From NCBI RefSeq assembly GCF_031769215.1, contig NW_026782576.1, positions 682,001 to 746,000 on the forward strand: 64,000 bases of DNA, given 5' to 3'. The translations under genes and the position numbers were made by a program. Source of the DNA: Ylistrum balloti (Eukaryota). Shown in pieces: positions 2,670-46,440 of the stretch; the stretch's first letter is position 1, and the number at the start of each line of letters is the position of its first letter. The notes below the pieces were generated by a model. The model was not told where the DNA came from and made no database searches. It worked only from the letters and a program-made list of their open reading frames with translations.

Positions 2670-3710
2670 AAATTCAAGCCGGTCGCCTGTCTGCCATTTA
2701 GTTTTTCTGATTAATCCCGAATGAAAGGGGCACATACAGAGAGTCACGGTAAACAAACTACGTATGAAATTTTAGAGCGATCCATCGCGTATTTCTAACG
2801 CAAAATAGCGACAAAAAAATTCTGTCAAAACCCAAAATGGCCTGTCCCCAAGTTGTTTTCTGATCAGTCCCAAAGTCAAATGGACCAGCTTGGGACCGAA
2901 GGAAACCTACACAATACATTTGAATAACATCTCTCCAGTGCTTCTCAAGAAATGGCGATAACAAACTTTCACTGTAAAAATTTAATATGACCGCCTGTCA
3001 GCAATTTTTGTTTAAAAATGAGCCACAAATAACGACCAAGTGAACCTACATAATATAATTGAATGATATCCAACCAATACTTCTCAATTTAATATGACCG
3101 CCTGTCAGCAATTTTTGTTTAAAAATGAGCCACAAATAACGACCAAGTGAACCTACATAATATAATTGAATGATATCCAACCAATACTTCTCAAGAAAAA
3201 GCGATTACAAACTTTCATCATGGTGTCCCCCTGTCAGCCATTTTCGTCTCCGAAAATTGGCAATGCAAAATACAATTAGTGGAAACTTAGAATAAAGCAT
3301 ACATTGCTTCACCAGAAATAGCGACAAATTATGACTGTCATAAACAAAGACAGTCGCCTGTCAGCCTTTTGTTTTTTAAATCAGGCCCAAAATAGACGAT
3401 GTACAACTCGGGATCAAGGCGAACTTTCACGCGTTTCTCCAGAGAAAGCGATATCAAACTATGACGATCGAAATCCAAGATGGCAATGCGTCGGCCATGA
3501 TATTTTTAAAGTCAGTCCACATGTGGACTATGTTCAACTAGGAACCACGAGAAACCTTTCAATTTGACCAGAATCCATCCAATGCTTCTCCAGAAGAATT
3601 GTTTCATGGACGGAAGGATGATGGACGGACGAACTAACGAACGAGGAAAAGCAATTTGAATAACCCAGTAACCCACTATCATCAGATCGTGGGCTATAAC
3701 GGTTCTTTTG
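2670..3710 (+). mobile_element. Degenerate non-autonomous HINE/pearl-like element with internal ~160-170 bp satellite units
   Basis: Recurrent motifs CGCCTGTC(A/G)GCCATTTT, TGATCAGTCCCAAA and CTTCTCAAGAAATAGCGATAACAAACTT, shared with 46560-47010; GGACGGAAGGATGATGGACGGACG microsatellite near 3608. The architecture matches bivalve HINE-like elements as I recall them; no database search was run. Confidence 0.6.
2980..3193. repeat. 107-bp tandem duplication inside the element
   Basis: ATTTAATATGACCGCCTGTCAGC...CCAATACTTCTCA occurs at 2980-3086 and again at 3087-3193. Confidence 0.9.
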
Positions 3711-4339: not shown

Positions 4340-6860
4340 CCATTTTGTATAAGTTTCATAGTGATTGACAAAGAGGTCCAGTCTTGTCATGTGATGTACT
4401 ATGGTAGGGTTATCGGGTTATTGAAAAAGAGGTCCCGTCTTGTCATGTGATATACTATGGTAGGGGTTATCGGGTTATTGATAAAAAGGTCCAGACCTTG
4501 TATGTGATATACTATGGTAGGGGTTATCGGGTTATTGACAAAGAGGTCCAGTCCTTGTATGTGATATACTATGGTAGGGGTTATCGGGTTATTGACAAAG
4601 AGGTCCAGTCTTGTCATGTGATACACTATGGTAGGGGTTATCGGGCTATTGATAAAGAGGTCCAGTCTTGCAATGTGATATACTATGGTAGGGGTTAATG
4701 GGTTATTGATAAAGAGGTCCAGTCTTGCAATGTGATATACTATGGTAGGGGTTATTGGGTTATTGATAAAGAGGTCCAGTCTTGTCATGTGATACACTAT
4801 GGTAGGGGTTATCAGATTATTGATAAAGAGGTCCAGTCTTGTCATGTGATATACTATGGTAGGGGTTATCGGGCTATTGATAAAGAGGTCCAGTCTTGCA
4901 ATGTGATATACTATGGTAGGGGTTAATGGGTTATTGATAAAGAGGTCCAGACCTTGTATGTGATATACTATGGTAGGGGTTATCGGGTTATTGACAAAGA
5001 GGTCCAGTCCTTGTATGTGATATACTATGGTAGGGGTTATCGGGTTATTGACAAAGAGGTCCAGTCTTGTCATGTGATACACTATGGTAGGGGTTATCGG
5101 GCTATTGATAAAGAGGTCCAGTCTTGCAATGTGATATACTATGGTAGGGGTTAATGGGTTATTGATAAAGAGGTCCAGTCTTGCAATGTGATATACTATG
5201 GTAGGGGTTATTGGGTTATTGATAAAGAGGTCCAGTCTTGTCATGTGATACACTATGGTAGGGGTTATCAGATTATTGATAAAGAGGTCCAGTCTTGTCA
5301 TGTGATATACTATGGTAGGGGTTATCGGGCTATTGATAAAGAGGTCCAGTCTTGCAATGTGATATACTATGGTAGGGGTTAATGGGTTATTGATAAAGAG
5401 GTCCAGTCTTGCAATGTGATATACTATGGTAGGGGTTATTGGGTTATTGATAAAGAGGTCCAGTCCTTGTATGTGATATACTATGGTAGGGGTTAACGGG
5501 TTATTGATAAAGAGGTCTAGTCTTGTCATGTGATATACTATGGAAGGGGTTATCAGGTTATTGATAAAGTGGTCCAGTCTTGTCATGTGATACGCTATGG
5601 TAGGGGTTATCGGGTCATTGATAAAGAGGTCCAGTCCCTGTATGTGATATACTATGGTAGGGGTTAACAGGTTATTGATAAAGATGTCCAGTCTTGTCAT
5701 GTGATATACTATGGAAGGGGCTATCAGGTTATTGACAAAGAGGTCCAGTCTTGCCATGTGATAAACTATGGTAGGGGTTATCGGGTTATTGATAAAGAGG
5801 TCCAGTCCTTGTATGTGATATACTATGGTAGGGGTTATTGGGTTATTGATAAAGAGGTTCAGTCTTGTCATGTGATATACTATGGTATGGGTTATCAGGT
5901 TATTGATAAAGAGGTCCAGTCCTTGTATGTGATATACTATGGTAGGGGTTAACGGGCTATTGATAAAGAGGTCCAGTTTTGTCATGTGATACACTATGGA
6001 AGGGGCTATCAGGTTATTGACAAAGAGGTCCAGTCTTGCCATGTGATAAACTATGGTAGGGGTTATCGGGTTATTGATAAAGAGGTCCAGTCCTTGTATG
6101 TGATATACTATGGTAGGGGTTATCAGGTTATTGATAAAGAGGTCCAGTCTTGTCATTTGATATACTATGGAAGGGGTTATCAGGTTATTGATAAAGTGGT
6201 CCAGTCTTGTCATGTGATACGCTATGGTAGGGGTTATCGGGTCATTGATAAAGAGGTCCAGTCCCTGTATGTGATATACTATGGTTGGGTTATCGGGTTA
6301 TTGATAAAGAGGTCCAGTCTTGCCATGTGATATACTATGGTAGGGGTTATTGGGTTATTGACAAAGAGGTCCAGTCTTGTCATGTGATATACTATGGTAG
6401 GGGTTATCAGGTTATTAATAAAGAGGTCCAGTCTTCGCATGTGATATACTATGGTAGGGGTTAATGGGCTATTTGTAAAGAGGTCCAGTCTTGCCATGTG
6501 ATATACTATGGTAGGGGTTATCGGGTTATTGATAAAGAGGTCTAGTCTTGTCATGTGATATACTATGGTAGGGGTTATCAGGTTATTGATAAAGAGGTCC
6601 AGTCTTGTCATGTGATATACTATGGTAGGGGTTATCGGGTTATTGATAAAGAGGTCTAGTCTTGTCATGTGATATACTATGGAAGGGGTTATCGGGTTAT
6701 TGATAAAGAGGTCCAGTCTTGCCATGTGATATACTATGGTATGGGTTATCGGGTTATTGATAAAGAGGTCTAGTCTTGTCATGTGATATATTATGGTAGG
6801 GGTTATCGGGTTATTGTTAAAGAGGTACAGTCTTGTCATGTGATGTACTATGGTAGGGAG
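4340..6860. repeat. 57-bp minisatellite, ~44 copies, with higher-order structure
   Basis: Unit TTGTCATGTGATATACTATGGTAGGGGTTATCGGGTTATTGATAAAGAGGTCCAGTC. ORFs 4732-4926 and 5188-5382 translate identically and lie 456 bp (8 units) apart. Confidence 0.97.
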
Positions 6861-9369: not shown

Positions 9370-11223
9370 TTAATATTGCCATTTTCCATTTGATTTACGA
9401 CCCCGCCTTTGACTCTCGATAAACATTTTGTGGGTTTTACGATAATGCCTTGTTAAATCTTTCTGAAGTCCAAACAAAGCAGGACATTTTGAACACTGAA
9501 ACCTCTTGAAATGCACACGATGGATATGATCATCAACTTTCTTTGTTGTGTCTGCTTTGTAGTCACACGAAGAACATAAAAACATTGCTGTTTCTGAGCC
9601 AACAATTGGCTGTACCAAACTTACAGAAGCCAACAGGGACTGAGGGATACTAATGCCATCTCCTGGCCAATGCATATTGATATCTTGATCAGCACACATG
9701 CCTCGATTTGTGAAGTTTGTTTGCAATCCGTCTACTGAAGTTACAGCTGAGTGTGGCATTGATAAAGATGCTGGAGTAGATACACAACTACTGGGAAGTA
9801 TCTGATGTGGGTGGATTGTTATTGTTCTCGAGCTTGAACCTACTTGTCCTTCATCAAGAACTGCACCAGGATGAATATTATTCTTTTCACAACCATCATC
9901 TGGTGAATTTCCATACTGATCAGCTTCCTCTGCATCACATATCTCACTCTTGATAAACTTTGTAGCCCCAGAATAACTACTGTCCGTAATATTTGTGGAT
10001 GAATCCTGATAACTGGCCATTCTGTCACAGGTACACGACTCCTTAGATGTCTCCCCAGAACTTTCATAATCAAAAGGTTCCAGTTTGATGACAGAAACTT
10101 GACTGTCTTCTACATGTTTTTCCATACTTTCTTCTTTGCTTTGTTCTCCATGTTTTTCTGATGAGATTGAATTCCGATCTTGTACATCAGAGTTGTCCAG
10201 ACATTTGGTGGTAGTCTTTGGACTGTTGAGATTATCCCCCTCGGTAACAGTAGCAGATTCAGTGGCCTTGTTAATTACAGAATAGAATGGTTGTACAGAA
10301 GGTTTAGGTCTACCAGGTGGGTCCCTCTGGGGACGCTTATAAACTCTACATGATCTCAATGACTTGTAATGTCTCTGTAAATCTTTCTGAAGTCCAAATC
10401 CTTTGTCACAGCTCCTACACTTCCATGGCCTTAAATGCACACGTACCCTATGGTGAAGCAGATTGCGACCACATTGTGTGGTATAACTACATTCTGAACA
10501 TGTAAGTGCTTCTGTATTATCTCCCTGTACTGTATCCTTGTTAAGTCCTGCTACATCATTGTCTTCCGCAACATTGGCATTTCCACTTGCGGCAGCTGAA
10601 ATTTCATAGTCATTGTTAGGGGCATTCTGTGATCCTTGTTGCAAACCATCCTCCTCAATATCACCAACACTATCAGAAACATTCCTGTTGTCATCAGAAT
10701 CACTTTCTACCTCTGTCAGTGTGATCACCTGTACGTTTCTATAATGTACTTCTTCAGAATTATCATCTTCATGAAAACGTCTCTTTTTCGAAGGATCATA
10801 ACGGCTTAGCTCATTATCGGTTGTTATGTTAGTACTGTTAGTGTTGTCGGATGATGTATCAGGTGTAGTCTGTGACCGTAGTTCTACTCTATGTGCACTT
10901 ACTGACGTATTGTGATGCATGCGTGTTCTTTTCAACTCTTCTTGCTGTTCAGGTGGCTGGACTATTTTCCCAGGAGAGTATCCAATACCAACATCAAATT
11001 CATTCAACACTTTGTAATATAGAACCAGTCCCGAGAGCAGATCGTGAACAGTTTTCATCGTCTGCCAGTTTCCTGCTAGTTTAGGTTGACGGCCTTGAAC
11101 AAACACAGCCCCCGTCATGTTACACACCTTCTGTATAACGGTGGGAAATGGAAACGACGGTGTGCAAAGTTCTTGAAACTCTGGAGTAATGTCCGCGTAT
11201 ATATTTGTAAATATGGCAGACAT
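9370..11223 (-). CDS. C2H2 zinc-finger protein (~617 aa) with two finger pairs, AT-hook-like motifs and a possible N-terminal KH-like domain
   Basis: Long uninterrupted ORF, first ATG at 11223 (MSAIFT). Fingers CSECSYTTQCGRNLLHHRVRVH / WKCRSCDKGFGLQKDLQRHY and CSSCDYKADTTKKVDDHIHRVH / FQCSKCPALFGLQKDLTRHYRKTH; PPGRPK and RRGRK follow the two pairs. Candidate acceptor (CAG) at 11280-11282 just upstream. Confidence 0.9.
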   Translation of the reverse strand: MSAIFTNIYADITPEFQELCTPSFPFPTVIQKVCNMTGAVFVQGRQPKLAGNWQTMKTVHDLLSGLVLYYKVLNEFDVGIGYSPGKIVQPPEQQEELKRTRMHHNTSVSAHRVELRSQTTPDTSSDNTNSTNITTDNELSRYDPSKKRRFHEDDNSEEVHYRNVQVITLTEVESDSDDNRNVSDSVGDIEEDGLQQGSQNAPNNDYEISAAASGNANVAEDNDVAGLNKDTVQGDNTEALTCSECSYTTQCGRNLLHHRVRVHLRPWKCRSCDKGFGLQKDLQRHYKSLRSCRVYKRPQRDPPGRPKPSVQPFYSVINKATESATVTEGDNLNSPKTTTKCLDNSDVQDRNSISSEKHGEQSKEESMEKHVEDSQVSVIKLEPFDYESSGETSKESCTCDRMASYQDSSTNITDSSYSGATKFIKSEICDAEEADQYGNSPDDGCEKNNIHPGAVLDEGQVGSSSRTITIHPHQILPSSCVSTPASLSMPHSAVTSVDGLQTNFTNRGMCADQDINMHWPGDGISIPQSLLASVSLVQPIVGSETAMFLCSSCDYKADTTKKVDDHIHRVHFKRFQCSKCPALFGLQKDLTRHYRKTHKMFIESQRRGRKSNGKWQY

Positions 11224-11599
11224 TTCGATCTTCACATGTAGTATGTAGTTATTTAAAGTTCACCGCGAGGACCCTCTACCTGTATGTGAAGTTGTGAAAC
11301 ATTCATCACATCCATAGACATTAGCAAATTTCTGACAGACAAGACTGACAGTTCGTTTTTTTGTACCGACGACTCAACAAGATTTCCTATAAAGGGAGAA
11401 AACTCTGTGTAACTGCAAGAGAACAGGTAGCGCTCTACGAAGTCGCAACATCCGAATGTCGATGCATAATTCAATCATGTAAAATATATCGTGATTAATA
11501 TTCAGTTCGCATAATTGTTTATGACCTATATTTTGTAGGTGACTGTTGTTTTAATTTGTTATTGTGAGAAGGAAGTATCTCCCGAAGAAAAAAATAGAA

Positions 11600-23747: not shown

Positions 23748-26700
23748 AGAAAGTACGTTAAACAACACTTGCTTTACTGTTTGACATTCACGTATATACA
23801 TGTACGCTCTAAAAGTGACGCTACCATTTTCTGACACTGTACGTACCTAGTCTTGAGAACTGTAAATGTTTTTGTTTTCCGAACTTGGATTAAAACAGCG
23901 AAAATTAGAAAATGATAGTGACGGAGGACACAATGGTATTTTCCATAAACAAACAATACATAGAAAATAAAAACTATGAAGGACACAGTAGTCTATTCTG
24001 TGAGCTCTGATGAAATATCTTTTCTTGCAGTATGTCATTTCAGTGAACGAGAAGCGTGAAGAAGTGAATACTCTTTTACGGTTTCTTTGATAAGAACTGT
24101 CTTCCAGTGTGTTATGATGGTGTACATGGAGCATGTAGCAGTGAATACCAGTGTACATATCCTCTATTAAGATTTAATGAAGATTGATGCCCGTCACACA
24201 TATCGAATTGGTGTTTTCCAGATCTCTATTTCGGTCCCGTAACACTGGAAATAGCGAAAGGGTTAAACGGTATATTAAGCAGCAGTATCATCAGCTCGGT
24301 AACTTAAGGTAATGCTTACAAATAATGTATTACTTTTCGAAAACGTTTCAAACATTACCCTACATCAAACAGTAGTTATCTTTCCTCTAGCTCAGTAATG
24401 TTAGGAGTCTGGAGACGAATGAGGTATATGAAAATTGACCAATATATTTACAATGTTGAAGTAAAGTTGATGAGGTGCATATGATTAAATCATCACCATT
24501 CTAATGATGCTGATTGTATGAGTTAATATTTTCTCTTGTTGAGAGTACTTGTATAAATAATATAAAGATTTTTGTTTCGTTTTTAAAAATGTATTGCTTT
24601 CTCTTGATGTCTATGTAAATTACTTACGTATGATTTATTTTGCACTTGGACAAATATTGTATACCAAAAATACATTCACAAAGAATTTTCTTCTTTCAGT
24701 TTCCCGGAGAAAGCAGTGTTGTTACACCTTGTGGCACTGGTCCTTGCATGGTTCACGATAAATCCAGAATTCTTCCAAGGCTGGGGGTTCTTATTTCGTG
24801 TCGGGTAAGGTCCTGCTGCCATTGCCGACTAGGTCACAAATTCTAGAAGAATTGTATTATTATTTTATTACAACACAAGTGTATCAACTATCGAGGCATC
24901 CATTTTTAAAACTAATGTTAACATGTGATTGCAGTACCCAGATATCTGACTAGCATCGTTAGAAAAACACAACAATTTTACAGTACATGGCAATTCAGCA
25001 GTACAATTGTCTATAGAATTGTTCTTGGATGTTTGGGATAAAAGGTTTATGCGTCAAATAGGGAAGTTAGGAAAGTGGAAATCAGTTACCTGATATGCAG
25101 AGAAACAGTCATAACCGAGTGGCAAAAATAATGAAATGGCAGTTGACTTTATTGTAAAACACACTGTATTATACACTCTCCATACCTAGATATCTGAGTG
25201 GTGCAGTACCAGCCATGTTTATCGCTATTCTACTGTTCGTCATTCCGAGCGGGATAGAGAAGAATGATGGTGAGTATCCCACAGACTTGGACATAGATTA
25301 CCTGGTAGACTGCCTGTTTCTTTATGTGTCATAATCAAGGTAACTGTATCTTAAATCACCTTTTGTGACATATTGCCCGATTTATAACAAGGAAATACTG
25401 ACGGAACTACACGGAAAGCATAAAAAAGGGTTCATTCACATTTTCGTAGTGTCTGATTTGTTTGGATGATTAACTATCGACATGGAGTGTAAGTATACAC
25501 AACATTGCCATTTTTCATTGACCCTCAAGAGACAAGTGAGTAGTATGGTGTGGTTATGTAACTCGACTGTGATTTCACATTGTTTCCTCAATTTAATTAT
25601 TTCGCTTAAGAGATAACGTTGGTACATTATTGATATACCTCTTTCGTTAGCACATCTGCTTTTATTGATTTCTGAATCCTTTACACACGTCAAGACATAA
25701 CATTCTTAGGTACTGTTTTCGTGCACCATTCAACGAAGCTTTTCGATAATGAATGTTGTTGCGATACCAATTATATAATATTTACGTCACAGATCCGTCA
25801 CGTGCGAACTTACTGGACTGGAAAACATTTAATAAAAAGTTTCCTTGGGAAGTGACGTTACTTATTGGTGGCGGGTTTGCTCTTGCGCACGCATGTAAGG
25901 TAAGTATTTCTTTATGTATAGAATATAATTTCTTATCAAAACCATTGAAACTACTCGTGTTTGGGATGAAGTGACACTTAATGCTGCATGTACAGCTTGT
26001 TTTTGTACAATCTTCTATAGTTCGTAAGGATCACTGTAATAAGATGAACAAGAGCAACGTTTTTTATTACTCTACCATCAAAACATACATGCTATCATAT
26101 CAGTGCATACTTTTCATTTAACATGTCATTAATATAATGAACCACTTCTTTAGCAATTGATTCTATTTACGTGTTACAAAATATATGTTTTTGTTGGCAG
26201 GAATCAGGACTTTCGCTGTGGCTCGCCCACCAGATGACTGCGTTAATTGGCGTTCCCACTTGGATATTGGTATTCATTGTCTGTTTGATCTGCTCCCTTT
26301 GTACAGAAGTTGCCGGTAACATCGCTATCTGCAGTATATTTATGCCTATCCTGGCCGATCTGGTAATTATATAATTATAAGATGTCTCCTTTTTAATGGT
26401 CTGCTTTGTTTTATATGTATAATGGTACGTGCCATCAGTTTTGTTGGCAATGTCATCTTACCTTATGTATTGATCATTGGAGGGTTGACAGAGTAGATCT
26501 ATAATACATTTACTCCTTTGTTTTAGTATACATGTTCTCTCCCACTCAGTTCTTCTGCTTATGTGTATATGTGTTTGACTTTGTGTTTTGATTTGAAGAT
26601 CTAGAATCCGTCTTTTGTGACTTAGGAAGACTTAAAAATCACCCCATACAGAGGGATCGGGCCATCACTTTTTCATGTTATTTAAATCTGTTATTGCTAC

Positions 26701-27906
26701 TGATGTGTCAAAAGACCAGCATGCCTACACGTTTGCCTGGCTTATTGTATATTTTTTAATTTGCTAGTTTCAAACTTACTTACAGTGTATTACAATGTTA
26801 ACACTCTTTATAATGCTATTATGTTTCCAGGGGAAAGGAGTCGGCATCAATCCGATATTCTTCATGCTTCCAGCTGCTATTTCTACGTCTTTTGCCTTCA
26901 TGTTACCGGTCTCCACCCCACCAAATACTATCGCTTTCTCCTACGGATACTTTAGGATTATAGACATGGTTTGTATACATAATCTGTCTCCACCCCAACA
27001 AATACTATCGCTTTCTCCTACGGATACTTTAGGATTATAGACATGGTGTGTATACATAATCTGTCTCAACCCCACCAAATACTATCGCTTTCTCCTACGG
27101 ATACTTTAAGATTATAGACATGGTTTGTATACATAATCTGTCTCAACCCCACAAAATACTATCGGTTTGTCCAACGAATACTTTAGGATTATACACATGG
27201 TGTGTATACATAATCTGTCTCAACCCCACCAAATACTATCGCTTTCTCCTACGGAATTTTAAGATTATAGACATGGTTTGTATACTTAATCTGTCTCAAC
27301 CCCAACAAATACTATCGGTTTGTCCTACGGATACTTTAGGATTATAGACATGGTGTGTATACATAATCTGTCTCAACCCCACAAAATACTATCGGTTTGT
27401 CCAACGAATACTTTAGAATTATTTAGGATTATAGAAACGGTTTTCATACATGTAATGTAAAACTGTTCCATGATTTATGGATTTTTAAAACGTATACGAG
27501 ACACTGAACCGTTGTCACACTGGTACTTGCCTCTATCTTTCGTCAATGCTGATCTGATGAGGTGCTGTTAATGTGAAGCATATGTTATACAGAGTTGAAA
27601 GTTTGGGGGGGATGTCGTTTAGATATTGACAGATTACATAAATACTGTAGCCTTCTTATGTACAGTGAAATATCACCTGTAGTATGTTGCATTTTCCCTT
27701 TTTTCATTTAGGTCAAGGTCGGTTGGTTTTTGAACGTGTTGTGTGTAATCGTCGTTTCTGTGGCAGTGAACACTTGGGGAATGATATACTTCCGATTTGA
27801 TGTACTTCCTGAATGGGCAACATTGTCGGATATGACATTTTTAAACTCTACCAGTTCAACATATACTAGCATTTTAAATTTTACACAGGCAGCGACTATT
27901 AAATAG
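14452..27906 (+). CDS. SLC13: SLC13 (DASS family) Na+-dependent dicarboxylate/citrate/sulfate cotransporter-like, 14 coding exons, 600 aa
   Basis: join(14452-14550,17505-17654,18412-18527,19715-19875,22499-22598,22704-22886,23251-23370,24222-24308,24700-24804,25190-25269,25793-25899,26201-26362,26831-26968,27712-27906). All introns are GT-AG, phases are consistent, total 1803 nt. Family motifs: YWVTETFPVAITA, ERWNVHKRFAL, LMLGFM..TTAMMVPI, GGIATLTGTGTN, LLDWK..FPWEV.LLIGGGFALA, ESGLS.W, FMLPVSTPPN; AATAAA at ~27946. Exact orthologue not assignable. Confidence 0.95.
14541..14829 (+). repeat. 40-bp tandem array (~7 copies) whose first unit is the SLC13 exon-1/intron-1 junction
   Basis: Real junction AAACTCGCAG|GTAAGTAGGCTGTCTCATGTAATGTATAGT, followed by copies AAACTAGCAGGTAAGTAGACTGTCTCAGGTAATGTATA(A/G)T. 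Confidence 0.95.
14866..17410 (+). repeat. 39-bp minisatellite (~65 copies) filling SLC13 intron 1
   Basis: Unit GATAATTGTAGTAAAC(A/T)CACAGG(T/G)AAGTTA(A/G)CTGTCAAT; shares the AAACT..CAGGTAAGT..CTGTC core with the 40-bp array. Confidence 0.97.
18780..19100. mobile_element. Degenerate dispersed-repeat fragment (HINE-like internal motifs) in SLC13 intron 3
   Basis: AGGTCAAAGGTCA, AAAGGTCACGTGATCC and CTTCCAAGATGGCGCCCATAGCAAC motifs, recalled as typical of bivalve non-autonomous elements. Confidence 0.3.
21390..21610 (+). mobile_element. Penelope-like element (PLE) reverse-transcriptase relic in SLC13 intron 4
   Basis: Translation DLPCLYLISKLRKNPYSQCFNAGSSSRSTKP resembles the PLE RT N-terminal motif LP.LYW.PKLHK.PY..R.IAGS..CS.K; truncated by a stop at 21608. 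Confidence 0.6.
21885..21945 (+). repeat. Short dispersed repeat; an inverted related copy lies at ~45262-45325
   Basis: ACATGGCGGGTGTCGTCAATGAAGCAGAAGACGCTC versus the reverse complement of 45262-45325, ACATGGCGGTTGTTGGCGTTAAAACAAAGGACGCTTACCCTTCCG. Confidence 0.35.
23696..23745. repeat. (CA)n microsatellite, ~25 units
   Basis: Direct inspection. Confidence 0.98.
26907..27420 (+). repeat. 77-bp tandem array (~6.6 copies) made of the 3' end of SLC13 exon 13 plus its donor and intron start
   Basis: Unit TCTC(C/A)ACCCCACCAAATACTATCGCTTTCTCCTACGGATACTTTAGGATTATAGACATG|GT(T/G)TGTATACATAATCTG. Donor-like ATG|GT at 26968, 27045, 27122, 27199, 27276 and 27353. Confidence 0.95.
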
Positions 27907-31650: not shown

Positions 31651-34600
31651 ATGGATTTGGGTGACGCCTTATTCCAGAAGTTGGAGGAGAAAGGACTTAA
31701 TGCGAATGACGTAGACGATCAGGAGGATGACTTTTACAGAATAATTTCCATTTTACTATATGGGGAGGCAAAGCGACATTCGAAATGTAGAGAACGAATA
31801 TGTACGTTTCAAACTGAACCAGAAAATATTAAATATTTTGAATTGTTTCTGAACCAATCTTCCAATACTGGTTCGCAAAAGAAAAGTTATCAAGAGGAAT
31901 TTTTGGATGATGTTAAAAAAAGAAATTATGATAGTACACCCCCCACTGCACGTGAGATATATGCTGCGTGCGAACTTATTGGACGTCCGATAGAGGCATT
32001 GGTGTGTAACTATAGCGATAAGGAGTCGATTTCGCCCACGCTGCAGTGGAGACTTTTTGTTCCGGTACTTGGGCGAGTTACTCCACAAACAAAGCAAAGT
32101 TTCAAAATGTTGATCCTGCTTAAAAGACACAAGGCAATCTTTCACGCATTCAAACCGCTATTAGGAGTGGACAATGAATCCATAAATGGGGCCGTCAATC
32201 AGAGTATGGATAACGCTTCCAATCAAAGCACAGATGCCATGGATGATCAACTTTCACATGAAATCATCTATCAGAGGACAGACGTACCCAGGCGTTGTTA
32301 TGGCAATAGGTTTTCCAACAAAATATTTTTGTCACCTATTTCCGTGGCTGACACAAGCTACCCCGATGCAAGCGAGTGGAAGCCAAATACAGAAATAGAT
32401 ACATTTTACCAGTGTTTGAGCCAGGAAATGTATGGTGTCTGTGACCATTGGAAACGAGTGAAAAATATTTTATTTGCACTGGAGGAAGAGGAAGATAGTA
32501 TCAATGTTTTTGCAGCTATTATCACAGACAAGGATTCGGAAAAAGAACAAGCTATGAAAGATCACATTTTGAAAATGAAAAAGGAAGGAAGCAAACCAAC
32601 AAAAACCGAGATGTTCGCTGCGGCAAGTCTTCTAAACGCTTATGTATATGTTCAAAGCTTCACAAACGGAGCCTACACGTGGGAAATATATCCACCTATC
32701 AGAAATAGGTTTTGCAGCGTGGAGCCAATGGATTCATTTGTTGCATTAAAATGTGCTAATATAACCGAGACGTATTCCATTGATCTGTCATTTGCTACCA
32801 ATGGTGACAATTTAAGAGAGGCAGCGCCAAAGGTTCCTGGCAACTTATTAACGATAAAGGAGCAGATAGACAGCATTACGCGAGACGTACTGGGTAAGTA
32901 TTACACCGACACCAGTCGTATGAAATATCCGTTCATGTAATTATAAATTATCAAATATATATAATAAGATTCTTGGAAATTCGCAAACGAACCTTTTTAT
33001 TGGGAGGTTTTCAATTCAACTCTTTAATTCTGCGGCGCGTACACGCCAGGAAATTTACACGCAATTACTCTATCCTTACCTGGACAATGATGATTACAAT
33101 GATTCTTACTTAATGTTTACAGCTCGTTTTGAAATATATCCACTGAGGTACGATGTATGAAATACATTTGTTTTGTTTTGATATGCTGTGTCTTCTTGTA
33201 GCCAGGAGGGTACCGTGTTGTGAAGGACATCTTCACCTATCACACAAGGACAATACCGGACGGAAGAGGCCCACAAAGGCGAGAAGGAATCCATTCACAG
33301 ATCCACCGTCTAGCGTTCGAAACGTTCTCAAACTTCTTCGGTCAGAAGGTCGAGAACTGGAGAAAATCGAAGCGTACGATTCCACATTATTTCGGTGCAT
33401 AAGCAAAGAGGTATCTGGTACGGAGGAGGAATTTGAATCCATTCGAGACAGATGTTCTGTTGGTTTGGGGGCAGATGTCAATGAAGTCGGGGATTCTCCA
33501 CGAATAAGTATGAGAGAACAGGAACAAGGACAGATTGTTCAGGCCTTAGCTGATTGGTTAAGTGTTTCTATATATATCTTCACACAGGCAGATGGTAACG
33601 ATCGGGTGCAATACCAGTGGCGCTCTTACCATCCTACGAGATCTGAACTCGAGGCCGACTTCATACACTCCCTTGGCTGTCGTTACTACATCACACTCTT
33701 CTTTGACATACGGAGCCGGAAATACGACAGGGTCATTCCAATCAGTGGTTGCAATTGCCAGCTGATGTCGCCTATCCCACTTTTCGTGGAAACATACGGT
33801 AAATATTTCCATTCTTTTTTTGTTGCGTCGTTGCGAAGTAAACAACATAACTTCATTTTAATATATATGTTTCTCGATTTCCCTTTATTAAAACCCCGCA
33901 TGGAAATGTGAGTGTCCCATACAGATTAGAGTAATAACGATGTCCCTCCGCCCATCTGTCTCTCCGTTATCACCTTCGATTCCGGAGATTATTGCAGAAT
34001 CAAGAAGGCCAAACTTTCAAAGTTTAAATGACGATAAACATTGATATGTAGATGGACAGTAGCGATTTATAGAGATATAATGTCAAAGTTACTGCTACTA
34101 ACATCACCACAGGATTTTACCATATATGATCATGGTACCGATAAATATTCGTTTATGACATGAAGCAAAGCTGACTGAAATCAAATGAGGAGTCTCTCGT
34201 CTACAGGTTAGGTTGACAAGAGTCAAATAAACATATTTTAATGGTAAATATTGTGTTATGACACCATAAAGCATCGTAAACCAGAAACGAGATCTCACTT
34301 GGCGATAGGCCAAGGTCACTAGGTATGGTGATACATGTGCATTTGTTACGACGACGATATGAAATAAAGTTGATCAGACTCTAATGTCATGTCAACTTTT
34401 TATAGGTCGGGATCGCTAGCACAGAACAGATGTCAAGGTTAAATTTTTGATATTGTACTTTATGTGATATGATAAAAACACCTTAACCAAAATCATATGA
34501 GGACGTGTCTGATTAAAGGTTGAGATGAACTGATTTGAAGCAGTCGTCACATTTTAAATATCTTACTGGAAAATACTTGCGACATTATGAACTAGAAAAA

Positions 34601-36988
34601 CAAAATGCAGCAAAAAATGTATTATCTCTCAGATATTACTATCAAAATTCTGTTTCTTAAATGAGAAATATTTTACCTACATACAATAAATGAAAAATTG
34701 AACTAAATGGAGAACCTCTATATAAGAGCTGTACATAAGAATCACAAGGTAGAGGCCGTTCTATTACACATCACACAATTATTAACTACATAATTCACTC
34801 AATTTTAATGCCTTTAAACATGCTATAATATTCTTTATCAACTCCGTTTTAGTATTGTACACATTGTGGGACCATTTCTGATATTTCAACACTACTTTCA
34901 ATCTTTCTTACACTGTCGGTTTATTTGAGTGACTTTTGTTTCAGGAGAAATACAACATCCCGGTATCGTCCAGATCTCTGAAACGAATCATCACATGACC
35001 TTAAAGCGACGTCTACCGTCACAGTTCAGTAATGAACAGTTTGTGTGTGAGACACGGAAACCATTGCTAGCACGTCAATTCTCTGAAAGTTACAGGGTCC
35101 TGCACGAACGTCAAGACATGTCGGCCCGGTTTATTGATTCCGTTTATGAGGACTCGCATTCTTTCTATAGGTGTCTCAGCAAGGAGCTGTTCGGAACGCA
35201 GGAACAATTTGGACTTATCCGTAAATGTCTTTTGAATGCAATAGAGGAATCACGTTCCGAGCTGGAATATGATTTAAAAGAACTGGCTTCATTGTTGGGA
35301 GGATCGCCGTTAACTTTGGATGAACTTAAGCAAAGAATCACTGACCTTAGAAATGCAGAAAATGAGGAAATTTATCTTGCAAGTGTTGTATTTGCAACTT
35401 CCATTTACGTACTGGGACGAGGAGATGCTAATGATCTGAACAGTTTTACTTGGAGACATTTTTCCTGGAATGTTATGAAGAAAGCCTACACCACACACAG
35501 TTGTGACAAACGCAGTCGGGAAATATGTCCATCCGGCGGGCGATATTACATTTCATTGTTCAAGAGCTCTGCTGGCCATTACGATCGAGTGGTTCCAAAG
35601 TACGAGCTATGTAATTGCGCAATGATGCTTCCCGAAGATGCGGAGACGGGTCCCCTAGATCCCAGTCAAATTAGGCTTGATGTTCCCAATCAGAGCATCG
35701 GTAGGTAAAAGCAATGGTTTCTTTGATGATTATAACTACACAAAACAAATGCATACAAATACATATATCCTCCTCGATCTCCGAAATATGTATTCAATGT
35801 AAAGGATACTCAATCAAGGATTCCGTGATAATGGGCATGGTAAATGTCAGATTGATGTAACAGTCTAGTGTTTTACAAATATTTCGTGAGGGTACATCCA
35901 TTGATTTCAATATTTCTCATATCTTTGTCAATTTATTTTGAAGGTAAACATCCAAGACATGACAGTATATCATGTCCATAGTTTAAAACTACAATTGTCT
36001 GGAAAGTAAATGTCCGTAAGATGTAAAACTCGAAAGCAAACATCTTGTTAGCACTATCTGCCCATTTTGGGAATGTTTTACAGCCATAAACGTTTTGCTG
36101 CTTTTAAAACGAAATGACATGTAAGGCAGTTTCTAGCAGGTATTTAATCATGAAATCTGGAATGATTGCATTCATAAATTTCATGAAACTATCTTTTTTT
36201 ACACAGATACAAGAGGTTTGCTCGTAACACGAAACGTTGATATGTATCTTACCAAACTACGGATATCTTTAAACACATGGCTACAGGTGAGTGAGGAGAC
36301 AGAAAAGATATGCCATCAGATTGTTGCAGAACTTGAAAATCGCCGTTTTGGCGTCAACATTGCTACCATAATAGGTGGCTCCACGGGTCTAGTCGGAACG
36401 GGGCTAGCAGTGGCTGGAGTGATTGCTGCACCATTCACTGGCGGTTTGTCCTTAGGTCTTACAATAGCAGGCGCTGCAGTCGGCGGAGTAGGTGGGGCTA
36501 CAATGGCAGGGTCAAAGATCACAGAAGTCGTTCTCGGCAGTAAGGCGACTGATGTTCTGAAAATCAAACAAACATTACTTAAAGCTAAATCTGATGAACT
36601 GCAGACAGCTATAACAGAATTTACGGAGAGCGTGAAGACAATGGAAGTTGACGTGAAAGAGCTTCTGCGCGATGACAGCCTTCAGGCTGTAGATTCTGCA
36701 ATCTTTTCAACAATCAGCACGCTTATCCGGGCCTTACACCACCTTTATGTCATCCCAATGACTGTTCTGAGGGTATCGTTCCAAGGTGTTGCTATGATTT
36801 CTGCGATACTCATTCCTCTCGCGGTCCTAGTAGACTTAGGCTCAATCGCACACGCGGGATGGAATCTGTCGAAGCAGTCAAGGACACAGGTGTCGGAGGA
36901 CTTGCGACGAATAGCGGTCGTTCTCAGATCATGTAGGCTTCAGCTGGAAACGTGGGCGTACGGAAACGAGGAAAAGGACGATTGCTGA
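31651..36988 (+). CDS. 1125-aa protein: four tandem OTU-like domains lacking the catalytic Cys plus a C-terminal apolipoprotein-L domain
   Basis: join(31651-32893,33202-33798,34945-35700,36207-36988); three GT-AG introns, all phase 1, 3378 nt open. OTU-like Cys-loop/helix segments: QEDDFYRIISILLYG..RH..CR, EIDTFYQCLSQEMYG..H, YDSTLFRCISKEVSG..IR, DSHSFYRCLSKELFG..IR; later E..AA..L and (H/K)YDRV motifs. ApoL hallmark: GLAVAGVIAAPFTGGLSLGLTIAGAAVGGVGG. Domain calls are by eye. Confidence 0.85.
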
Positions 36989-41810: not shown

Positions 41811-44755
41811 TTAACAGCATATACAGCAGCAGCACACCCCGCAACCAATCAACAACCCGATGATGATTAACGCCACCAGGATCGGAACCCATCTGTTAAC
41901 ACAAACAATGAACATATCTAAATATGAACACTTAATATCCATGTACTGTTTTGCCTGTATATTTCAGCTTGATAATAAGTCATGCATAGAAATGTTTCTA
42001 TAGAGTAATATTTCAGGTACATTCATAACAATGTTCACGAAGTTTCGCCTCCAGCCATCTGTCATGTAAGTGATTAATTTCAAACCCTGTCATAGTGTAA
42101 TATTGATTAAAATGTTTTTGGTGAATCAGAGATGTTATGACATGAAAGTTATGTGTAACATTGTCACATATTAACTTTACTCCATATAAGTACCATATCG
42201 ATTTCTGTCGAATTCTCAAATCGCACTCGGACGAATTCACTTTATAAAACGCGCCATTTTGCGATCTCAGGATATCACGTGCACACTGTCGATGAAGTGT
42301 TTGTTTTACTTAATTGTGTCGCTACACTGAAATACCTCACAATATTATTTGTTTTTATAACTGAAAAAACGACAGAAGGAAAAAATATTTTGATGACGAA
42401 ATTTTGTTTTGTTTTTCTTGAAAACGGGTTAAAACTTACATGTGACGAGTAAACCAGTTGACACAGAACGTAGATCTGTCTCGAGCCGGTGCGCGGAAGA
42501 ACCAATTGTTGCAGCAACTGTAAATGTTACCTTGGAAACAACAATAATTCTCACACCACCGCTCATTCATTACATTGCCCATGACGTCATAATGCGACCT
42601 GCAGCATTCACCACTTTCGGCCACCTTCACTGACAAAGTAAATAAACACCAACCATTAGATTCAAACATCCTGAATGAGCTACATGAACTGTCACATTGT
42701 ACATAGATCGTATTTTGTTTGCAGGTCAATGTCGTTATAATGAATAAAAAGAGGAAACATTTTTCAGTCTGAGATACGGCTACGAAATGGTAAATTAATA
42801 TATATTCATTGCAGGGGTAATCATTATTATTTCAGCATTCATGCGGACGTAGTCACGTGATATTTGGACACATTCCGTGAATCGGCTGGCATGATCTCAT
42901 GAATGCATTGATTTTTATCAAAATCATTTGAACAAGTTACACCATGTGCATTTTTTAACAATTTTAAGTCCAGGAACCGTGGGAAAGTGTTGGAATTCTT
43001 AGCATGGTTGTAGTAATCGCTAAATCAACGTCGCTAATAAAACAATGAAATAAATTGAATTGTAGTATTTACTTTATATGAAACGTTACTTACGTTTGAC
43101 ATGTAAAAATAATTAAAACAGTCTATAAAATTCAGTTCATTTATACATTAAAAAAAACACGACAGGGAAAAACATTTTAACTTCATGAAAGTAAGGGCAT
43201 AGATTGAAAACGATAGTTTACAAAAATACTTATATTAAAGATATTGCAACAACTTGTTAGTAACAAGAATTGCTTTCTTTTTTTTGTGTGTGTGTGTCCC
43301 TGCATCTAAGTGTGTTTACCTTGGGGAAACAACTTAATTGTTTTTTTTTTCAAATTCGTAATAATATATCATGTTACATGCAAAAATACTTTACTTGTCT
43401 CTGAACATTTAAATCGTTTGTTTCTATAAAATCAGATAGACAGCAAATACCACTCCTTTACAATAGGTATAAGTAATGACGAAACTGTATAAAACAATAT
43501 TTCCTTCTTCATTTGACTCATATCTCTAGCTATCGGCAACATTGAAAATGTTTATTTTGTAATCTATTTGCGATCATGACGATAAATTTTGATGTGTAGT
43601 TAAGTCAAATGTATATTTTCATTTCTTGGCAATCATTAACTTCGTCAAACTGAGGCGTCAGAAAGCTTTCGCTTGTTAACTAAACATCTGTATGGTGCAG
43701 TTTAATTTCATATTTCGTCTCTGCTGCATATCATTCCAAATTTGAGTGGCATTTGTTATTTACCTATCTTTTGTATAATCCTTTGAGAATGCAGGTGGTT
43801 AGACACTGCTGTTGGACTTAAGTCCTGAGGTTTGTATGCCACATTTAAATTCATTTGACACAATTCATAATAAACTTAATTTCCTGGTGCTCTTGTGAAA
43901 TATTGCTAAGTAGAGCACTGTTCTGTGTGCTTTATTGGCATGTTTCGACCAATTTTGTTTTTCGTCAGATGCCTCTCCTGTACTCAAATTTGTATTAAAA
44001 AGTTGCCAGTCACTTGTGTGAATTTTGTACAATCTTTGTATTGAAAGCAGTCAATAGTTGTGGTAGTCGGGGAAAGTAAAACATACATTTTTCAGGTGAA
44101 GACATTTTCTTTTTAAAATATATCCTTTTTATCATTAATTCATGAGAACCTTTTAAGCCATATGTTTTTTAAAGTCTTGCAGAGACCAAAGTTAGAAACC
44201 GGTAGAACTGCTTTGGTTGATGAGAAATAGAAAAGTACTTATGCTATATTTAAAACACTTTGGTCACTTATTGTGTTACAGCTGTAAAGTGCTGTGATAA
44301 CAGAAAATAAAAATATTACAGTGTGCAATGTCTGTGTTACTGCATTTAACTGGGCGCACTAATTGCTTTGATGTGGATGGGAGAGATAGTAATTCTTATG
44401 TGCTTTACTTATTCTGATCTTAAATATTACTGTTATTTCTACTCTGAAGCTCGGTCAAATGGTTAAAATGTCCCGATATACCATTATCATGATATAACGT
44501 GTTTTGGAAAAGTAGGCTTTTGGCGGTGCTAGATACGTATATCACAGGTACAACATAGGCGCTATTCAATTTTGTTGAGATCTCAATCATCTCAATTACA
44601 AAAGATAGCATCGATACCTTTGACATAATTAGTACTGGACGTTCCCTGAAAACAAACTGATTTTATAGAAACATATACATTATGTTATTCGTGGACTTAC
44701 CTAAAACACAGAGGAAACTCAAAACCCAGACGAAAGAAAACTTTCCTCCGACCAT
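41811..44755 (-). CDS. Small Cys-rich single-pass membrane protein (Shisa/CYYR1/VOPP1-like architecture), paralog A, 108 aa
   Basis: complement join(44701-44755,42440-42629,41811-41892), GT-AG, phases 1 and 2. Signal-like MVGGKFSFVWVLSFLCVLV; ectodomain ESGECC..RWCENYCC..YSCC..RAP..FCVNWF; TM WVPILVALIIIGLLIG; then CGVCCCCICC*. Confidence 0.8.
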
Positions 44756-46440
44756 AATGTACTGTCCATGCACACTCTACAAAAGTCTTTGTGGTCAAGT
44801 CATGCTGGGTGTGTTGCATGTAAGGTGAGAGGTTATGTCTACGTCCATCCCTCTTCTCAATGGCTCTATTTGATGTGCTGCCCTGCTGACCCCCTGCGGG
44901 GAGGTACTGTATACATACGTAGTAAGGACGAGAGCATGTAGAGCGGACAGTAACCAGGGGGTGCGATGTTATTACACTTGACAGGTGTAATACACCTACA
45001 CTCCTCGTACACAACGTGATGATGAATCATAATCAGTTGTTTTTCTGCATTTTCACAGTAATTTGTTGGAAAACAGAAAATTTTCATATTTTATTGTCAT
45101 TTGGGCTATCGTTTGGCTCATTTATAGTTTTTTTTTTTTTTTTAATTTTTTTACGCTAAACTAGAACTGCAAAGTACAGATATATCTGGTGTGCAATAAA
45201 CCGACAAGAGAACATAATTATAATCCAAACTTCAATTAAGTGAAACTAGGGCAAAATTTTCAAAAAGGTGTTTCGGAAGGGTAAGCGTCCTTTGTTTTAA
45301 CGCCAACAACCGCCATGTTAAGCAATGTGATGTTCCCGAGTGAGAACAAGGGAATCATCAACAGAACTACAAGTCACACCAAAGTATCCTGAAAAGTCTG
45401 ATAAAGCAATATCTTTAAAATTATGATTCTAATTATATATCATAAATTTATCTAAAACAATTGTCACTGTACTCGCCAAACGTTAGAAGTATTACTCAAA
45501 GACTTTAAAATAGCTACATCCATATTCTATCTAACTAATATAACTGTTTTTATCCCTTTCGGTTTTAAAGCCAAATCCGATGTTGTGCGGTCTCAAATGA
45601 CACCCAAATGAAGTGAGCCCATTCAACAGCATAGAAATAAATATTTGTAACCTGTATATATCATGATATTAGTTAACTAAACGTTGTAGTAAAATGAAGT
45701 TTACGGGCACCTACAGCTTTCTTGTGATCAAATGCACTTTTCTATCCTCAAGCCGAAAAGAATCGAAGTGATTTGCCATTAAATATTTATGTATTAATCC
45801 TAATTATCTTCTATTTAGTTAAAACATTGTTATCAAGAGATGTTTCCAATTTAATTTTTATGGAGATTTCGATACAGAGGTATGTGGTTGTGATAAATAT
45901 GTTATCTTTCCTTAGTAACTAGTAGGCACAAGCACGGACTTGGTTATTTCAGTTCGTGACATGAGTTTGATATCCGATTTTCGCAAAATAATATTTTGTT
46001 TTCTAGTAATACTTTAAGGGTATTTTGTTAAGATTTTTCGTGAATATTTGATATTTTGTTAGCTAGTCAATATTCCAGTGAGATTTTAATATATATAAAT
46101 ATGTATTCCCAGCGTCTGACAGTGTCATTCTCTTGTGTATTTTGGTCGGGTTGGTGTAATGCCCTGTTGAATCCTTGATATAATGTTGATAATCTGATGT
46201 TCTAGGACTTACTGTAGATGACTGAATTGTGCATTGTGTCCATGTCTCTTCCTCATCACCTACTTATTGCTGTGTAGATACATGTACACCTACACCTTAT
46301 CTGCAGTGTACTAATTAATCATATCATACAGCTTCGGTTGCTCTGGTAATCCCACAAGTGTGGAAGAAATACGGAAATCATTGGCCCAATCAGTTAGTTG
46401 GAATGTTTATCTGTTATTTTTTTAAATTTGGATTCGATTT

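Follow-up and report, generated by a model that had tools for sequence, protein, structure and literature searches.

What could a protein do that carries four copies of a deubiquitinase fold, none of them with a catalytic cysteine, ahead of a domain of the apolipoprotein-L (ApoL) type? The question is raised by a gene of the scallop Ylistrum balloti, located on the forward strand at positions 31651-36988 of a 64,000-nucleotide stretch of contig NW_026782576.1 (positions 682,001 to 746,000, assembly GCF_031769215.1). This stretch is hereafter called the window, and its numbering is used throughout. The evidence presented below supports an intact gene encoding a fusion of four repeats related to OTU proteases (R1 to R4) with a C-terminal ApoL domain. 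The repeats look catalytically dead and are apparently maintained by selection, and a tentative answer can be given as to how they might serve the ApoL domain.

The coding sequence can be read directly from four long open reading frames (ORFs) of the + strand, at 31651-32940, 33153-33911, 34929-35708 and 36218-36988. Spliced at 32893|33202, 33798|34945 and 35700|36207, the four exons add up to 3378 nucleotides, corresponding to 1125 codons plus a stop codon, with no internal stop. All three introns are phase 1 and have GT...AG borders, with a pyrimidine tract before each AG. This four-exon model, which the original prediction had already put forward, is identical in every residue to the database entry XP_060080896.1 (P0001), an 'uncharacterized protein LOC132560250' from Ylistrum balloti. 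Exon 1 (31651-32893, residues 1-414 and the first base of codon 415), of which the splice borders were checked and which has the same counterpart in the Mizuhopecten and Argopecten orthologues, contains the start codon, R1 (31651-32166, residues 1-172), a disordered linker and R2 (32356-32850, residues 236-400). Exon 2 (33202-33798, residues 415-613) corresponds to R3, with a core at residues 455-606, and exon 3 (34945-35700, residues 614-865) to R4, with a core at residues 665-845. Exon 4 (36207-36988, residues 866-1125) encodes a linker helix, the ApoL domain and the stop codon. With its acidic and hydrophilic N-terminus, the protein is not expected to have a signal peptide and should be cytosolic. 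A tblastn search with the protein revealed no extra copy of any part of the gene in the window, the only matches being the four exons and weak cross-matches between R3 and R4.

Does the ApoL exon really belong to the same gene? Exon 4 might be a separate gene, with an internal promoter and a phase-compatible splice that is only coincidental, but such an annotation artefact looks extremely unlikely. The orthologues of Mizuhopecten and Argopecten have the same four exons with the same phases, and full-length OTU-ApoL gene models have been obtained independently in about ten bivalve species from several families, including Saccostrea, Pinctada, Crassostrea and Pecten, by different annotation pipelines. 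Moreover, a contig of 4193 nucleotides (L004, Logan SRR27896758) contains an unbroken ORF of 3033 nucleotides that runs from R1-R4 into ApoL without the three introns, which places the repeats and the ApoL region on one molecule; this contig reads like a transcript. Together with the conserved neighbourhood of the locus (see below), these observations support the predicted fusion of the pseudo-OTU array and ApoL into one intact gene. In L004, which represents a distant family member, the frame is broken at an A-run around 3170-3197 and the ApoL C-terminal motif (...WNLSKGSKT...) resumes in another frame (3170-3530), reflecting a sequencing error or, alternatively, a genuine truncation.

The relationship of the repeats to OTU proteases is not apparent from routine searches. 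A Pfam scan of the four exon products and of the full protein gave no direct match to the OTU family PF02338, which belongs to the papain-like clan. In phmmer searches of R3 and R4 against the PDB sequences, chance matches only were obtained. A word-indexed search for homologues of exon 3 and of exon 4, each taken singly, returned no matches; its length window is the probable reason, as the family was subsequently recovered by an exhaustive profile search. The relationship emerges from family profiles. When aligned with canonical mollusc OTUs by hhalign, the family profile of R1 reaches a probability of 98.7% (E 1.5e-16, 142 columns) and that of R2 99.5% (E 2.4e-23, 138 columns). R3 and R4 are clearly related to each other (BLASTP E 9e-15, 32% identity), and a profile built from both, run against 1.84 billion representative proteins, returned 86 proteins, consisting of the family itself and of many proteins with an intact GDGNCFFRA...NHYDRI signature. 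Pfam-positive OTUs were recovered by this profile at E values of 1e-13 to 1e-5, and the proteins with the intact signature pass the Pfam OTU model at E 1e-9 to 1e-14. Two paralogues of the family, P0007 and P0002, are themselves above the Pfam OTU threshold. A protein language model places R1, R2 and R4 next to clusters of OTUs, the scores being 0.91-0.95 (0.95 for R4).

Structural modelling leads to the same assignment. AlphaFold2 (AF2) models were obtained for the full-length protein (predicted local distance difference test score, pLDDT, 66.5; predicted template modelling score, pTM, 0.66) and for residues 1-414 (pLDDT 69.7, pTM 0.74). The alignment used for the full-length model included as one row P0084, a weak match that was rejected as a family member because it is an immunoglobulin-repeat protein. 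In these models, R2, R3 and R4 match solved OTU structures with Z scores of 10.4-13.7. The best match is OTUD3 for R2 (residues 235-384, Z 13.7, 130/141 residues), OTUD5 for R3 (residues 447-595, Z 10.9) and OTUD1 for R4 (residues 657-831, Z 12.8, 144/150 residues). R1 (residues 10-194) aligns best with an OTU protein of the AlphaFold database (AFDB), at a template modelling (TM) score by hit of 0.59, and the top 25 Foldseek matches in the PDB are all OTUs. Taken on profiles and models together, all four repeats are OTU-derived and have the alpha/beta fold of this superfamily, in agreement with the OTU-like folds proposed originally.

Are the repeats still enzymes? The catalytic positions were read from the alignment to canonical OTU relatives. 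At the Cys position are found Asp27 in R1 (codon 31729-31731), Thr251 in R2 (32401-32403), Thr476 in R3 (33384-33386) and Ser686 in R4 (35160-35162), within the motifs QEDDFYRI, EIDTFYQC, YDSTLFRC and DSHSFYRC, respectively. The His position is occupied by Ile163, Thr374, Lys588 (33720-33722) and His825 (35577-35579), and the acidic position two residues further by His165, Ser376, Asp590 and Asp827; His825 and Asp827 belong to a GHYDRV motif. Each of these motifs had been quoted in the original prediction, which had also noticed that the nucleophile is lost in all four repeats and that the His is kept solely in the fourth. The loss of the nucleophile is in fact family-wide, with no Cys in the catalytic column of any of the 51 repeats from 14 family members. 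This column contains mostly Asp in R1, Thr, Ser or Asp in R2, and Thr or Ser in R3. The Gly-Asn of the Cys loop is likewise lost in the repeats. Judged on these positions, the protein lacks the catalytic features by which OTU enzymes are defined. In a Mizuhopecten paralogue, R2 has an 'NC' two residues upstream of the catalytic column, without the His.

R4 deserves a separate discussion, because Ser686, His825 and Asp827 could in principle form a serine-type triad hydrolysing ubiquitin, a ubiquitin-like (UBL) protein or an ester. A Ser stands in the Cys column in 12 of the 13 R4 copies, and P0094 and the clade of scallop orthologues have retained both His and Asp. Against this stand the Ala found at the nucleophile column of the Argopecten orthologue, the thirteenth copy, the absence of the His from 8 of the 13 copies (it is kept in the other 5) and the replacement of the Cys-loop Gly-Asn. 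We know of no natural OTU with a Ser nucleophile. That R4 is still an enzyme seems very improbable, and a conserved Ser-His-Asp hydrolase was rejected, in view of the Argopecten Ala and of the lack of the His in most paralogues. The His loop of R4 (residues 824-829 here) shows a further variation: in oysters, pearl oysters and some scallop paralogues it reads G-x-Y-H-R-I, with a His two residues later, at the canonical Asp position. The same late-His arrangement is seen in the scallop R1 (I-F-H) and in human OTULINL (His352).

Structural columns are largely kept, namely the Ser (S255) and Lys of the ...SK..YG helix, an E-I-x-A block, the Trp strand (W336), the aromatic residue after the His position, R368 and the CNC..P tail. 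The most conserved columns are not evenly spread; they cluster in the Trp strand, around the His loop and in the helix of the former active site. A Cys-x-Cys(x4)Pro motif closes each OTU unit throughout the family, at residues 598-600 of R3 (CNC, 33750-33758) and 836-838 of R4 (CNC, 35610-35618) in the present protein, and this CxC tail has been lost from the Ylistrum R2. The motif is also present in active mollusc OTU relatives. Each repeat has two further conserved Cys, one in RC[IL]S and one before RYY, which together with the CxC pair could form a metal site or a disulfide set.

The nature of the C-terminal domain is more straightforward. Exon 4 matches the Pfam ApoL family (PF05461) with E 3.7e-9 and 36.9 bits, for a gathering score of 25.9, and the full-length protein is also above the gathering threshold, with 32.0 bits, as are the orthologues. 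The match spans positions 78-289 of the 298 of the Pfam model. The protein therefore belongs to the ApoL family by the Pfam criterion, and the ApoL domain of the original prediction is genuine by that standard. A phmmer search of the domain against the PDB sequences gave chance matches only. The region is wholly helical in the AF2 model (865-939, 946-1019, 1022-1066, 1071-1087 and 1093-1117). Within the Pfam match lies a Gly-rich hydrophobic helical hairpin (36359-36508, residues 917-966; Kyte-Doolittle windows 1.4-1.8), in which the motif AAPFTGGLSLGL is present, and a second hydrophobic segment (36743-36862, residues 1045-1084) has a Kyte-Doolittle maximum of 2.21.

APOLs are known for their membrane action in immunity (PMC10937811, PMC13177371). 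The bivalve protein shares with the vertebrate APOLs (APOL1, APOL3, APOL6, mouse APOL7C/9) the Pfam ApoL match, the all-helical organisation and the Gly-rich hydrophobic hairpin, and, with the intracellular ones, the lack of a signal peptide. In contrast to these essentially single-domain proteins of about 250-400 residues, it carries an 865-residue N-terminal array of four pseudo-OTUs, and its Pfam match is partial. Any action of its ApoL domain on membranes is putative. The ApoL region can also be aligned structurally with bacterial alpha-pore-forming toxins of the XaxAB/YaxAB/Smh/Ahl type, which are long helical bundles with a hydrophobic hairpin (Z 11.7-13.3 with XaxB/YaxA/SmhB; Foldseek ranks 26 and 30), but there is no sequence similarity and unrelated helical bundles reach the same Z range; on the model, this likeness is a resemblance in shape only. 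When model residues 396-1125 are aligned onto XaxB/YaxA, the superimposed part comprises, besides the ApoL helices, helix 398-414 from the end of exon 1. The model thereby hints that the array may pack against the ApoL bundle.

How old is this combination? Proteins of 1000-1130 residues with the same order of parts are found in Mizuhopecten, Argopecten, Pecten, Saccostrea, Pinctada and Crassostrea virginica, and C. gigas also belongs to the family, judging by the accession K1PI23. The sought OTU-ApoL architecture thus occurs in scallops, oysters and pearl oysters. The orthologues of Mizuhopecten (which has at least two additional paralogues), Argopecten and Pecten are 70%, 68% and 74% identical to the Ylistrum protein, respectively. 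Most family proteins pass the Pfam ApoL threshold and two pass that of Pfam OTU. These proteins are present in RefSeq and UniProt as 'uncharacterized' or under the automatic name 'Apolipoprotein L3', and no description of the architecture was found in the literature searched for an OTU-ApoL fusion, bivalve ApoL3 or K1PI23, which agrees with the original statement that no such fusion had been described. An oyster paper merely lists 'apolipoprotein-L' among salt-stress terms, and invertebrate forms are absent from two recent reviews of the APOLs. We could not find this combination of two well-studied modules described.

A tree, from which P0011, P0009 and P0084 were excluded, was computed from the 51 repeats together with 13 canonical OTUs. 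Each of R1, R2, R3 and R4 forms one clade across species and paralogues, with Shimodaira-Hasegawa-like approximate likelihood-ratio test (SH-aLRT) supports of 97, 92, 94 and 95, and R1 and R2 are sister groups. Since each repeat position has its own clade, the four-repeat array is older than the diversification of the family and the oyster-scallop split, a time span of several hundred million years by our own estimate. Selection was estimated from pairwise Nei-Gojobori ratios of nonsynonymous to synonymous substitution rates (dN/dS) in three scallops, with values of 0.12-0.24 for R1, about 0.10-0.12 for R2, 0.11-0.17 for the R3 core, 0.14-0.17 for the R4 core, 0.04-0.08 for ApoL and 0.33-0.49 for the disordered R1-R2 linker; dS is saturated (about 1-2.5), which makes these ratios rough. 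In spite of this saturation, dN is far below dS in every repeat, and each of them is, on these comparisons, under purifying selection.

The nearest sequence relatives of the repeats are active mollusc OTUs with a C-terminal CxC tail, such as Pomacea PVD27018.1, Haliotis XP_046339917.1, Biomphalaria XP_013094684.2, Mercenaria XP_045207354.2 and Liolophura XP_064617771.1; these are ordinary gene models, from apple snail to abalone, chiton, Biomphalaria and hard clam. They have in common with the repeats the ...SK..YG helix, an EIYAAA..L...IYVL block, the Trp strand, a YDRI motif and the CNC..P tail. They differ from them by a single OTU per protein, with intact GDGNC and NHYD (at the Pfam OTU E values given above), and by the lack of ApoL. 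Most simply, the repeats would descend from a host mollusc OTU lineage that already had the CxC tail. Such closeness to a mollusc-wide active OTU family could suit a decoy or guard, in which the dead OTUs would mimic host OTU deubiquitinases and a pathogen factor engaging them would release the ApoL effector. Sensor-plus-executioner fusions are common in invertebrate immunity. However, the dN/dS values of 0.1-0.24 and the stable one-to-one orthology among scallops are unlike an arms race, and no pathogen partner is known to us. We consider a decoy improbable.

Comparison with known pseudo-OTUs is instructive for the array itself. OTULINL (FAM105A), the sole characterised pseudo-OTU, has a disrupted triad (Asp139/His350/His352), shows no cleavage or binding of ubiquitin and has been suggested to act through protein-protein contacts at the endoplasmic reticulum (PMC7862380). 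The present repeats share its OTU fold and disrupted triad, and R1 also has an Asp at the Cys position and a His at +2. OTULINL is membrane-associated, to which the ApoL-bearing protein may be likened in view of its predicted membrane role, but it is a one-domain protein with its membrane motif at the N-terminus, instead of four repeats followed by a C-terminal ApoL. For both models, the first 50 PDB matches include no OTULIN or OTULINL entry; the best ones are OTUD1, OTUD3, OTUD5 and viral OTUs. Membership of the OTULIN/OTULINL subfamily was rejected, the nearest sequence relatives being the mollusc OTUs with the CxC tail. Tandem OTU proteins from rust fungi, rotifers and other organisms in the AlphaFold database, to which Foldseek aligns two to three of the present repeats at once (ranks 3-9 and 12), differ by the lack of ApoL and have only 10-15% identity to the repeats.

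What, then, would the array do? We propose that it acts as a non-catalytic binding or regulatory module that sets when and where ApoL acts on the membrane. Its ligand would most likely be ubiquitin or a conjugate of the ubiquitin-like type, contacted simultaneously by several weak sites; arranged four in tandem, these would provide avidity for chains or coats. The protein would then combine sensor and effector in one chain, serving cell-autonomous defence or regulated cell death. The tail of ubiquitin is known to be bound by OTU folds. Alanine mutants of the active site of deubiquitinases (DUBs) are described, in the account given by PMC10919355, as high-affinity ubiquitin binders (Morrow 2018), and R4 of the Argopecten orthologue is a natural counterpart of such a nucleophile-to-Ala change. 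Ubiquitin or a UBL is favoured as the ligand because the OTU cleft binds ubiquitin, because the conserved columns surround the former active site and because removal of the nucleophile can tighten the binding of ubiquitin by DUBs. A binding or regulatory module for ApoL with this preferred ligand is a proposal to which we give nearly, though not quite, an even chance. In a more specific version, the array would recognise, through its multiple sites, the coats of ubiquitin or UBL proteins on invading bacteria, damaged vacuoles or viral factories and would directly license ApoL to disrupt the membrane concerned; this is possible but rather doubtful.

Several points weigh against this proposal. 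The precedent of OTULINL, without ubiquitin binding, is one of them. Pseudo-DUBs are often scaffolds or allosteric partners (PMC10919355), and the tail-binding groove may be remodelled, given the loss of the Cys-loop Gly-Asn. The model confidence is moderate (pLDDT 66-70), and the saturation of dS blurs the estimates of selection. Some of these points would equally suit an array unrelated to ubiquitin, serving as a scaffold, an oligomerisation platform, an autoinhibitory cap for ApoL or a binder of another protein or lipid partner. OTULINL, with its contacts at the endoplasmic reticulum, and the common scaffolding role of pseudo-DUBs provide precedents for it; neither the Gly-Asn nor the His is conserved; and the pTM of 0.66 of the full-length model suggests a defined packing between domains. 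The clustering of the best-conserved columns described above speaks in the other direction, as it fits a retained cleft. An array of this kind, without a ubiquitin ligand, seems a plausible but on balance unlikely explanation.

The surroundings of the gene are partly conserved. The SLC13-type (Na_sulph_symp) transporter gene located upstream of the Argopecten orthologue is collinear with 3' exons at 24695-27891 (+) of the window, the end of this gene lying about 3.8 kb before the OTU-ApoL start. The zinc-finger gene (633 residues) upstream of the Mizuhopecten orthologue matches 9370-11235 (-), where a single-exon ORF of 621 residues with C2H2-type zinc-finger motifs is found, with up to 94% in tblastx segments against the Mizuhopecten gene. 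In Mizuhopecten, no SLC13 gene separates the zinc-finger gene from the OTU-ApoL orthologue, which points to a rearrangement of the locus or to a difference between the assemblies. Downstream, a 108-residue gene that follows the orthologues in both other scallops matches 42417-42663 and 44690-45005 (-), at 83% and about 76% (tblastx). Elsewhere in the window, very long ORFs (604 and 186 residues) at 4399-6839 (-) are made of units of about 19 residues (…RLDLFINNPITPTIVYH…). They correspond to a minisatellite of 57-bp period that is open in one frame, in a region (4-8 kb) of strong GC skew. A 599-residue ORF at 59825-61624 (+) has the look of a reverse transcriptase of a long interspersed nuclear element (LINE).

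If the array does read ubiquitin coats and license ApoL in this way, invertebrates would have, in a single polypeptide, a counterpart of the mammalian pathway in which a ubiquitin coat leads to a recruited membranolytic effector, and the function of a ubiquitin receptor would be established for a pseudo-OTU for the first time. It is a candidate for how an ApoL-type effector could be aimed by a built-in sensor. Should the array turn out not to bind ubiquitin, the family would still be the largest conserved pseudo-OTU array known to us. It is also a natural pseudoenzyme case, in which a protease fold has lost its nucleophile and is still under purifying selection. The OTU-ApoL combination has been kept repeat by repeat since before the divergence of oysters and scallops. 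The gene may be regarded as a candidate immune gene in farmed bivalves, which are hit by Vibrio and herpesvirus disease.

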